A DNA stretch of 23,894 bases from Macrostomum lignano (taxonomy: Eukaryota): contig NIVC01005169.1 of NCBI GenBank assembly GCA_002269645.1, positions 1 through 23,894 on the forward strand, in the 5' to 3' direction. The notes under the pieces were generated by a model, which made no database searches, was not told the origin of the DNA, and was given only the letters and a program-made list of their open reading frames with translations. Of the stretch, positions 7,101-13,284 are shown one piece after another. Made by a program: the position numbers and the translations under genes. Positions within the stretch are counted from its first letter, which is position 1, and each line of letters opens with the position of its first letter.

Positions 7101-10100
7101 TTGACGCCTGAAAGCGCACACATGCAGATACGTACGAAGGCACATGCACGCTCACGCAGGGTGTACAACGGCCCCGACTTTCTAATCGTGCGGCATGTAC
7201 ACTCTCTGGGTGTGAATCGCACGATAACCAACCCAACGTCCAATTTTTCGCGAACAAGGCTTAAATGAGAAGATTAACTAATATTCAACGACTTTTAGAT
7301 CCATTTCGACAAACTGATTGCCCAATTCATTCACGGCGATCCGGAAGTCAACATTGACTCAATGGTAATCGCGGTCGACAACCCCAATTACTTCTATCGT
7401 TTGGAAAATCTGCTCAAGACACTTCGAGATGAGTGAGTGCACGCTTGCTTATGCCGCGTCTTGAGCCTCTCTGTCAGATTTTAAGCTGAAGGAACGCTTT
7501 TCCGTTCCGTCCATTGGATCTGTCAATTTCACTTTTTCTTCACCGGGTCCCTATCTATTTTTCTCTTCCCATCTCACAACCAGGCGCAACTGTAGTCTAA
7601 GCTAGTTAGCATGTCTTAAGGTCTTTCGCTTCCGTATGAGCAGCTAATTCCTATTTGTCTTCGAGATACATAAGCTTCCATCCGAGACAGCTGCTAAGAC
7701 TGCTTTTTATACTGTGGCAGACATGTGACTGGCTACACGTGGGCGTCTCAGCACCCCCTCCTCAACCCCTCGGGAGGCGCTCAGGGTAAAAGCCAAGAGG
7801 AGAAAAAGATACTTGCACATGGTAACAAAGGTTGACAGTTTGTGCTCGCATCCACCCTGTGTTCAAAGAGTAACGAGCCGTCTTCCCTCTCTGTGTGATC
7901 TCTTCTCTGGGTCCCTGTCTGCATCTTCTCAGTCCTTTGACTTTCTTTCAGTTGCTATTGATCTTTTCTACTTTTGGTCTAAGATTTTTTTGGTTTTATT
8001 TAACGATTTTAGCGACTTAAAGAAATACCTGGAGTTTTGCATTATACGCCATTTTGCGCCATATTACTCGGCGAAATCCCGCCGAGATTGTCTGAGACAC
8101 TCAGCTCAGCTCAACGGTCAGGAGCACGCTGAGGAGCAGTGGCTTACCTGCTTGAGGCTGCTTCGCTCCCCCGGCCTAAATGCCGTTTATTTTGGCGAAA
8201 TGAAAGCCAAACTGAGGCTCGGAATGGTGAGTTCCCTGATAGACTAGTAATGAGCAGAGGTACATGGGAACGGAGTGACATGGGAACGGAGTGATATGGG
8301 AACGGAGTGACATGGAAACGGAGTGACATGAGATCGGAGTGACATAGGATCGGAGTGACATGGGATCGGAGTGACAAGGGAACGGAGTGACAAGGGAACG
8401 GAGTGACAAGGGAACGGAGTGACAAGGGAACGGAGTGACAAGGGAACGGAGTGACAAGGGAACGGAGTGACAAGGGAACGGAGTGACAAGGGAACGGAGT
8501 GACAAGGGAACGGAGTGACAAGGGAACGGAGTGACAAGGGAACGGAGTGACAAGGGAACGGAGTGACAAGGGAACGGAGTGACAAGGGAACGGAGTGACA
8601 AGGGAACGGAGTGACAAGGGAACGGAGTGACAAGGGAACGGAGTGACAAGGGAACGGAGTGACAAGGGAACGGAGTGACAAGGGAACGGAGTGACAAGGG
8701 AACGGAGTGACAAGGGAACGGAGTGACAAGGGAACGGAGTGACAAGGGAACGGAGTGACAAGGGAACGGAGTGGCAAGGGAACGGAGTGACAAGGGAACG
8801 GAGCGACATGGGAACGGAGTGACATAGGATCGGAGTGACATGGGAACGGAGTGATATGAGAACGGAGCGACATGGGAACGGAGTGACATGAGATCGGAGT
8901 GACATAGGATCGGAGTGACATGGGAACGGAGTGACATGAGAACAGAGTGACATGAGATCGGAGTGCCATAGGATCGGAGTGACATGGGAACGGAGTGATA
9001 TGGGATCGGAGTGACATGGGAACGGAGTGATATGGGAACGGAGCGACATGGGAACGGAGCGACATGAGAACGGAGTGACATGAGAACGGAGTGACATGAG
9101 ATCGGAGTGACAAGGGAACGGAGTGACAGAATCGTAGTTTTCTCAATTTCAGATTTCAAACGTCTTGGTGCCTCTTCTAAAGGAGGCTTTTGTTGAACTG
9201 GTCCGATCAAGACCTACTTTAAGTCAACAAACAAAGCAGTCAATTGCTACAAAGGTTAGAAAGATGACGTGTTTTTCGTGTTATTGCATATAAACTTGCT
9301 TCTATTTGAGAGAATGTCCTATTCCTAAATCTTTGTAGGTGAAATCAATGAGATTCATTATTGGGTATAGTGAGCAGCACCTGCAACCAGCATTCCTCGA
9401 TGAGTACTTCCGTGAAGTAATAATTTCTAAGTTTGATTCTGGATCAAATAATATACTGAGATATAAAAATACAACTTACTTATTAACTCGAAGCCCTACT
9501 TTTTGCTTTTCAGTGGAATCTTACTTCTAACCAGACCCTGCTGCAGATGGTGACTGGTTGGACAAAATTTCTACAGTTCAGGGCTAGAGCACGACTCAAG
9601 AGCAATCGATCGACATTTGAGTCAGTGCCGTTAGTTATTCTACGGGCGCCAGGATGCCCACAGCCCTACAGCAATTACTATCACTAGTGTATTTTAATTC
9701 AGTTTTTCTACCGGTAAAAGCAGTGCAACTAAGTTAACTATAAAATTACTATTTGAGGCATTTACAATTCCAGGGAGACTCTGGACATCACTTCCGTTTA
9801 TCCAAGCTATCACATTGAAGAGAATGCAGTTTGTAAGGGATTTTTTCTTATAAAATTTCTCTTAAAATCTGCATTGCAAAGCATTGTAGAAAACTGTCAA
9901 ACTGTGTGAATTTAATTTTCAGTTGTACCAGCAGCATTCTTCCAATGGCCATTCCATATGTGGGACAATTCAATGCCATAGTAAGTTGTAGCCACAGGTA
10001 CTAAAATAACAAGATGGGCCACTCAGGCAAATATACTTTTAAGTAAAGCAGCTTTCTACTATCAGTTCAGTAGCAAGAAGAATACATAAGGTATATTTTA

Positions 10101-13100: not shown

Positions 13101-13284
13101 AGATATGTGGATTTATTTGTTATTCAATGTTTGCTGCTCAAAGATCCATGATTTGCAGTACTGCAACTGCAACTTGTACATTTCCAGGGTTGAATTTGCT
13201 GTCCAAGGTTCGCCAGTGTTCAACAGAGCATTCTCATGCCACGAAAATCAAATGCCGGAAACTGCGTGGACGTGCAGCCCTTGA
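1667..13284 (+). CDS. Neprilysin/endothelin-converting-enzyme-like M13 family protein, type II membrane, predicted catalytically inactive (16 exons, ~821 aa)
   Basis: Hand-spliced exons: 1667-2489, 4214-4314, 6003-6170, 6867-6974, 7299-7432, 8013-8226, 9153-9254, 9339-9416, 9514-9629, 9774-9832, 9923-9980, 11348-11415, 12124-12227, 12781-12945, 13025-13095, 13188-13284. All junctions are GT..AG and phase-compatible; total 2466 nt, no internal stop. M13 hallmarks in order: TM helix, [129 protein letters not shown]. An extra phase 1-1 exon (2592-2693) is possible. Confidence 0.9.
4330..4690. repeat. (TCTG)n microsatellite with TTAGTG interruptions
   Basis: ~90 TCTG units starting ~15 nt after the donor at 4315; TTAG interruptions at 4527 and 4619. 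Confidence 0.98.
5473..5933. mobile_element. Possible decayed non-autonomous DNA transposon carrying the 20-nt array
   Basis: Left end CAGTGGCGTA (hAT-like terminus); right end CACGGCATTG matches its reverse complement 7/10; no TSD found. Confidence 0.25.
5597..5917. repeat. 20-nt minisatellite (AAGAGACAGGGATGCCCACC), ~16 copies
   Basis: Direct tandem units with point variants; intronic in the M13-like gene. Confidence 0.95.
6323..6570 (-). mobile_element. tRNA-derived SINE-like element
   Basis: Minus strand begins GGCCGTAGCCGAGTGGTCTGGCGC (A box, + coords 6551-6561) then GGCTCGATTCC (B box, 6507-6517). No intact cloverleaf; the body continues ~170 nt, and its distal part recurs at 7127-7225. 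Confidence 0.6.
7127..7225 (-). mobile_element. Truncated diverged copy of the SINE 3' region
   Basis: GATACGTACG..GGCACA..CTCAC.CAGG.GTGTACA.CGG.CC..ACTTT..ATCGT..GGCATGTACACT aligns with 6323-6409; no tRNA head. Confidence 0.55.
8262..9129. repeat. 16-nt minisatellite (GGGAACGGAGTGACAA), ~54 copies
   Basis: Fills almost the whole intron 8227-9152; homogeneous core ~8371-8800 with variant units on both flanks. Confidence 0.98.
10367..11183. mobile_element. Non-autonomous TIR DNA element (817 bp), GGG...CCC termini, 8-bp TSD AAAATGCT
   Basis: TSD at 10359-10366 and 11184-11191. Imperfect TIRs: GGGAGTACGACGTTTGCTTGCAGGAACTTTGCTTGC versus reverse complement of the right end GGGTCTATGAAATTTGCTTGCGAGAAGTTTGCTTGC. 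The paralogous segment near 12630 has a single AAAATGCT and no insert. Confidence 0.85.
10878..11172. repeat. 14-nt subterminal tandem repeat (TTCGGCAAGCAAAG), ~21 copies
   Basis: Lies inside the right arm of the 817-bp element; a few inverted copies occur in the left arm (~10378-10500). Confidence 0.95.
12386..12718. repeat. Intronic duplicated segment, copy 2 (uninterrupted)
   Basis: Colinear with 10112-10366 plus 11192-11256, with scattered substitutions and indels. Confidence 0.9.

Follow-up and report, generated by a model that had tools for sequence, protein, structure and literature searches.

A probable M13 pseudopeptidase, expressed and selectively maintained, in the flatworm Macrostomum lignano

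Inactive homologues of the M13 zinc peptidases are numerous in insects, and roles are known for few of them (Goe, Frma and Nepl15). Gone early (Goe, synonym Nepl2) of Drosophila is a type II M13 pseudopeptidase in which all active-site positions are substituted; the ectodomain is needed for its function, catalysis is not, and the protein is believed to trap epidermal growth factor (EGF) ligands (PMC11266112). In the same genus, 21 inactive neprilysin-like (Nepl) genes have been catalogued, the class being defined by similarity to neprilysin together with the lack of at least one of HExxH, ENIAD, CxxW and NA(Y/F)Y, and peptide sequestration was suggested for the secreted Nepl proteins (Meyer et al. 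2021, PMC8223033). The non-peptidase members of the Drosophila M13 expansions are expressed and conserved, and ACN-1 of C. elegans, an essential M2 protein that resembles angiotensin-converting enzyme and is without an active site, has been cited as a non-enzymatic precedent (Bland 2008, PMC2259306). Here we describe an M13 gene of the flatworm Macrostomum lignano that occupies positions 1667-13284 of contig NIVC01005169.1 in the Mlig_3_7 assembly (GCA_002269645.1); this contig, 23,894 bp in length, is the whole window analyzed, and all positions below refer to its forward strand, on which the gene lies. BOX15_Mlig033059g1/g3, as the gene is annotated, comprises 16 coding exons (stop counted in) for 818 amino acids. 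We consider that it encodes an expressed, selectively maintained and catalytically dead M13 pseudopeptidase, retaining the M13 architecture and a signal-anchor, with a probability of roughly 0.8. An earlier note on the same DNA had proposed an intact neprilysin-like pseudo-enzyme with every catalytic motif replaced; its observations are confirmed, and its interpretation is supported in part.

The equivalence of the motifs was established from a phmmer alignment to the neprilysin chains in the PDB and from a second alignment, made by MAFFT, to four bacterial M13 sequences in which the motifs are intact. Neprilysin VNAFY corresponds to VYPSY (residues 620-624, positions 9796-9810; N542Y and A543P), HEITH to AQMTK (residues 664-668, positions 11385-11399; H583A, E584Q and H587K), ENIAD to LAFAT (residues 717-721, positions 12805-12819; E646L and D650T) and DVHSP to DSYFP (residues 779-783, positions 13070-13084; H711Y), while the C-terminal CRVW has become CSP, with the Cys kept and the terminal Trp absent. 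All three zinc ligands are gone (H583 to A, H587 to K, E646 to L), as is the catalytic Glu (E584 to Q). The four motif positions given in the earlier note are exact to the base, its reading of the usual terminal CxxW as CSP matches the end of the open reading frame (ORF), which runs to WTCSP and the stop at 13284, and its claim that the three zinc ligands and the substrate-binding motif were lost from an intact frame is upheld by the neprilysin and bacterial alignments. The surroundings of the former site have changed as well. Aligned to neprilysin, the flatworm protein carries the replacements R102V, R110Q and F106S, at residues that we take, from crystal-structure work, to belong to the S2'/S1' region, and M579S, V580A, V692T and W693H, at residues that presumably line the S1' pocket. 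The equivalents of F563, D590 and R717 are retained, and I558 is conservatively replaced by Phe.

As judged from the alignment, none of the residues now at the five key positions (A, Q, K, L and T) can serve as a zinc ligand or activate water, and with every zinc-binding and catalytic residue replaced, function as a zinc endopeptidase would be impossible. That the protein is nevertheless an active peptidase, by way of another exon that supplies canonical motifs or of non-canonical metal ligands, is in our opinion extremely improbable. The D590 and R717 equivalents speak for such activity, and catalytic residues are reportedly relocated in some proteins classed as pseudoenzymes (PMC10211241); against it, all six frames of the window are devoid of HExxH, and the matches to ENIAD-like motifs or NAYY in any frame of the contig are chance ones outside the exons. 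The contig thus holds no alternative catalytic exon of the kind that the earlier note had said would overturn its proposal. Codon 717 (12805-12807), which aligns to the third zinc ligand E646, specifies Leu in g1/g3 and Ser in a further gene copy, g2. This free variation also counts against activity, and L717S suits a position that has lost its importance for metal binding.

With HExxH, ENIAD, NA(Y/F)Y (YPSY at residues 621-624) and CxxW all lacking, the flatworm protein falls into the class to which the Drosophila Nepl proteins belong. Nepl is a descriptive class and not a clade, and membership implies no orthology to the insect Nepl proteins; the flatworm gene belongs to another phylum, and its locus bears no sign of a tandem family expansion. 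As a precedent for function, the closest is Goe, which is likewise a type II transmembrane M13 homologue with its key sites substituted (EAxxD...V in Goe, AQxxK...L in the flatworm protein). Goe differs in having a demonstrated germline and EGF receptor phenotype. Because the substitutions differ and the two lineages are insect and flatworm, orthology with Goe is unlikely and the loss of catalysis was probably independent. The likeness to ACN-1 extends to being an invertebrate zinc-metallopeptidase homologue without an active site; family and fold are different, and the comparison is an analogy only.

Membership in the M13 family is clear from the Pfam profiles, a check that the earlier note had suggested. 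Peptidase_M13_N is matched at residues 174-560 with 107.4 bits (1.4e-30; cutoff 32) over profile positions 1-380 of 381, and Peptidase_M13 at residues 624-808 with 41.5 bits (1.5e-10; cutoff 24.5) over profile positions 4-195 of 205, the Pfam gathering score serving as the threshold for both domains. The best matches by sequence among solved structures in the PDB are neprilysin (6.9e-27) and ECE-1 (6e-23), and identity to neprilysin and to the bacterial M13 proteins is only about 20%. All 10 of the 10 family-wide disulphide cysteines are kept (residues 152, 157, 175, 183, 237, 491, 699, 766, 804 and 816), in line with the earlier claim that the structural cysteines are intact, and they align to the neprilysin pairs C56-C61, C79-C734, C87-C694, C142-C410 and C620-C746; a sixth disulphide of neprilysin is found in mammalian neprilysins only (Bland 2008, PMC2259306). 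In the C-terminal lobe, 20 of the 77 columns that are invariant in the four bacterial proteins are kept (26%, against 36% in the N-terminal lobe). These are scaffold positions with Pro, Gly, Phe, Trp or Cys, together with D590 and R717, and zinc ligands and catalytic residues are not among them. Human neprilysin (MME) and ECE-1 share with the flatworm protein the two Pfam domains, the type II topology predicted for it, the five disulphides and the D590 and R717 equivalents, and differ from it, at about one residue in five identical, in having the zinc ligands, the catalytic Glu, N542, R102, H711, the CxxW Trp and an S1' pocket that is remodelled in the flatworm.

A single strong hydrophobic segment (residues 97-121) follows an RRREK cluster, with a Kyte-Doolittle maximum of 2.25 over 19 residues; the signal-anchor segment lies at positions 1952-2029. 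Since the basic RRRE stretch precedes the hydrophobic segment, in accordance with the positive-inside rule, hydropathy analysis predicts a type II topology; an intact transmembrane anchor was described in the earlier note as well. At the predicted cytoplasmic edge of this segment there is a run of five cysteines, CCCCC (positions 1961-1975, residues 99-103), which is a plausible candidate for a palmitoylation cluster.

Three near-identical copies of the gene are present in the duplicated DV1 genome. Each keeps an ORF of 818 codons together with the dead motifs, and none has a stop or frameshift; their coding sequences diverge by 0-1%. The second copy (L001; NIVC01002528.1, 10001-22328) is 100% identical in its exons and 0.2% divergent in its introns, so it carries no information on selection. 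Its differences are limited to the repeat-rich introns 1, 2 and 6, and either a very recent duplication or a haplotype would agree with the redundancy that the DV1 assembly is reported to have. The third copy, g2 (P0007; L003) on NIVC01000029.1, shares all 16 exons and the dead motifs, with SAFAT at the ENIAD position. Between the window and g2 there are 24 differences in the coding sequence, 16 synonymous and 8 non-synonymous, which by the Nei-Gojobori method give a synonymous rate (dS) of 0.029, a non-synonymous rate (dN) of 0.0043 and a dN/dS of 0.15 (binomial p=7.6e-6 against the 77% of non-synonymous changes expected under neutrality). Divergence is 1.2% in the introns that are free of long satellite arrays, and the non-synonymous rate is 0.35 times that of the non-repeat introns (p=0.002). 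The low dN/dS and the low non-synonymous rate together show that purifying selection has acted on the whole gene since the divergence of the copies.

Expression is implied by the way in which the database models were made. The GenBank models of Mlig_3_7 were built only from genome-guided and de novo transcript assemblies of RNA sequencing (RNA-seq) data, in which transcripts were cut by trans-splicing and poly(A) evidence and ORFs were called by TransDecoder (PMC5730564). The existence of models g1-g3 in an annotation of this kind indicates a transcript with this exon structure, and the RNA-seq support sought in the earlier note is implied at the level of the gene models.

The intact copies, the selection result and the transcript-derived models also sustain the earlier claim that this is not a decaying pseudogene. 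A recently inactivated gene that is still transcribed and has not yet accumulated disabling mutations could be imagined, given that copies 0-1% divergent in their coding sequence leave a short window for any test and that non-synonymous changes are not clearly depleted in the C-terminal domain. We regard this as very unlikely. At about 20% identity, with all motifs and many pocket residues replaced, 818 codons nevertheless remain open in three copies, all ten scaffold cysteines are kept and dN/dS over the whole gene is low. So many substitutions without a single disabling lesion are unlike neutral decay: with 5.1% of trinucleotides in the sequence being stops, a frame of about 738 codons would stay open by chance with a probability of about 1e-17, and the remaining two frames of the M13 coding sequence contain 38 and 27 stops.

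Several observations weigh against the reading of a maintained pseudopeptidase. The selection test is a comparison of paralogues within M. lignano at a dS of only about 0.03, and expression is implied by the annotation procedure and not by read counts; in the full texts and supplements of three M. lignano papers, there were no expression values for Mlig033059. Word-indexed protein searches returned no flatworm or insect orthologue, the matches being the M. lignano copies, four bacterial M13 proteins and one protein of the red alga Porphyra. An exhaustive HMMER search with P0002, a mis-spliced older fragment of the protein, found only P0002 itself and a second older model, P0001, and tells little more than that close relatives are lacking for the middle region. 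The AlphaFold2 model, made from a 7-sequence alignment, has a predicted local distance difference test score (pLDDT) of 40.8 and a predicted template-modelling score (pTM) of 0.40 and is unusable for inspecting the cavity; the top 15 Foldseek matches of this low-confidence model are all M13 proteins, with template-modelling scores of 0.27-0.43 and root-mean-square deviations of about 18-19 Å. The ex-catalytic lobe (residues 612-818) has 5 non-synonymous and 5 synonymous changes and a dN/dS of 0.29 (p=0.05), compared with 0.10 (p=2e-4) for residues 126-611, and its non-synonymous rate is about equal to, and no lower than, the local intron rate. In exons 14-16 (12781-13284, compared with 15127-15630 of L003), 10 of 333 nucleotides differ, against 7 of 724 in the introns between them (Fisher p=0.03), and the five replacements that distinguish the copies there are K712R, L717S, K785E, E806D and M809R. 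This excess could reflect relaxed constraint, adaptive change or patchy gene conversion. Finally, a simple reading of the protein as a peptide trap is weakened by the absence of N542, R102 and the S1' residues.

Some of these points would be explained if only the N-terminal part (tail, transmembrane segment and M13_N lobe) were functional and the ex-catalytic lobe were a relaxed passenger needed for folding or export. The regional dN/dS values, the non-synonymous rate of the C-terminal domain and its smaller share of kept bacterial-invariant columns all favour such a division. However, the two M13 lobes interlock and share the disulphides C79-C734 and C87-C694, all of which are kept here; exons 10-13, the ex-HExxH exon among them, show 100% identity between the window and g2; and the split of non-synonymous and synonymous changes does not differ significantly between the lobes (Fisher p=0.10), the counts being tiny. 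We therefore hold a passenger lobe to be unlikely. The dN/dS comparison, proposed in the earlier note for orthologues and run on the paralogue g2, bears out constraint on the whole gene, and constraint on the dead lobe alone is not demonstrated at such small counts.

A pseudopeptidase of predicted type II topology would expose its ectodomain at the cell surface or within the secretory pathway, and it would act by binding rather than by cleaving. By analogy with what has been proposed for Goe and Nepl15, the role of the protein could be that of a ligand trap or decoy, or of a partner in protein-protein interactions. With N542, R102 and several residues of the S1' pocket replaced, a ligand would probably be held in a non-canonical manner, and a remodelled cavity or the outer surface seems likelier than short-peptide docking in the style of neprilysin. 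The earlier note had proposed a peptide-binding receptor, scavenger or adhesion partner; the replaced docking residues argue against a role that simply keeps peptide docking of the neprilysin kind. A more elaborate proposal can be made, in which a fast-evolving M13 pseudopeptidase of the Macrostomum lineage lost catalysis independently of the insect Nepl proteins and Goe and now traps ligands at the cell surface, or serves there as a co-receptor, by means of a remodelled cavity, perhaps, like Goe, in reproductive or stem-cell signalling, the changes in the last three exons being adaptive tuning of the binding surface. We offer this version as speculation and think it rather unlikely as a whole.

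The literature searched contained no earlier account of this gene, nor of any M13 pseudopeptidase from a flatworm. That neprilysin-like proteins without catalysis occur in insects, as stated in the earlier note, is well documented by the catalogued Drosophila Nepl genes, and the flatworm gene is a further example of modest novelty. Its interest lies in the ancestral type II anchor: if convergence is assumed, the combination of catalytic loss and a kept M13 cage also arises outside arthropods and nematodes. M. lignano is a transgenic model amenable to RNA interference and is suited to the study of the role of this gene. The record, named "hypothetical protein" or "Peptidase_M13_N domain-containing protein", merits the label of a non-peptidase homologue and exclusion from counts of active neuropeptide-degrading enzymes.

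The gene model itself is firm. Translation of the 16 spliced exons is an exact match to GenBank PAA45955.1/PAA57115.1 (P0003; 818 amino acids, "hypothetical protein"), a protein that sits on two contigs of GCA_002269645.1, one of them being NIVC01005169.1. All 15 introns are GT-AG and the phases are consistent throughout, so that the frame and splice sites of the earlier note stand as described. Two older UniRef proteins of M. lignano match the exon translations at 94-99% identity. An alternative splicing into 15 exons, without exon 2, with an acceptor at 5962 and with a donor at 9629 instead of 9620, is open and GT-AG, yet it mismatches the GenBank protein and was rejected.

Exon 1 (1667-2489, residues 1-275) encodes the cytoplasmic tail, the transmembrane anchor and the start of M13_N with C152, C157, C175, C183 and C237, and aligns to neprilysin residues 55-144 at 36 bits. 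The annotated start is at 1667 and a second in-frame ATG is at 1856, which gives a cytoplasmic tail of about 95 or about 32 residues. Exon 2 (4214-4314; 101 nt, residues 275-308) aligns with the GVxVLFxxxxxQD stretch of M13_N in bacterial homologues, and its inclusion makes the M13_N match a single stretch. Exons 3 (6003-6170), 4 (6867-6974) and 5 (7299-7432) of the spliced model are followed by exon 6 (8013-8226), which holds C491, the equivalent of neprilysin C410, then by exon 7 (9153-9254), exon 8 (9339-9416), in which the IGY motif closing M13_N is conserved, and exon 9 (9514-9620). In the C-terminal lobe, exon 10 (9774-9832) contains VYPSY, exon 11 (9923-9980) the equivalent of FPAGILQPPF, and exon 12 (11348-11415) AQMTK, with GFD changed to AFD and D590 kept. 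C699, the C620 equivalent, is in exon 13 (12124-12227), and LAFAT is in exon 14 (12781-12945). Exon 15 (13025-13095) encodes THCGT, in which the C694 equivalent is kept next to the V692T and W693H replacements, and, further on, DSYFP and the R717 equivalent (in KNR). Exon 16 (13188-13284) encodes FSCHEN, with the C734 equivalent, and the final TCSP, with the C746 equivalent.

The two older UniProt models of the gene are mis-built. P0001 ("Protein kinase domain-containing protein") contains a translated 14-mer satellite of intron 11 (10863-11117) and joins M13 exons 12-14 to a downstream gene, and P0002 (exons 3-6, 9, 12 and 13) skips exons 7, 8, 10 and 11, the VYPSY exon among them. A look-up by protein gave no contig on record that encodes either of them.

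Tandem satellites fill the introns (4325-4690, 5598-5917, 8262-9128 and 10884-11175) and continue downstream of the gene (14894-15277, 17201-17516, 18520-18881, 19783-20265, 20596-21255, 22282-23010 and 23569-23894); examples are (TGTC)n, a 16-mer repeated 54 times and a 14-mer repeated 20 times. The arrays vary in length among the three gene copies, intron 2 being 1688, 2373 and 2420 nt and intron 6 being 926, 926 and 1150 nt long, and many of the long ORFs in the window are merely satellite repeats. A dispersed element of about 370 nt is present in intron 11 (10076-10366 and 11184-11257) and in intron 13 (12352-12719), the two copies being about 76% identical. The intron-11 copy is interrupted by about 820 nt that hold the 14-mer satellite, and a short inverted piece lies at 9992-10077.

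Downstream of the M13 gene, four very glycine-rich ORFs on the same strand (14346-14711, 15331-15567, 15812-15907 and 18919-19118) match the C-terminal part of P0001. The GenBank annotation of the contig calls no gene over them, and a PDB search with them gave no match. Their similarity to Pfam ALK_LTK_GRD is below threshold (E=0.01, 16 bits against a cutoff of 24.5), and they may represent an unannotated fragment of an ALK/LTK-like receptor.

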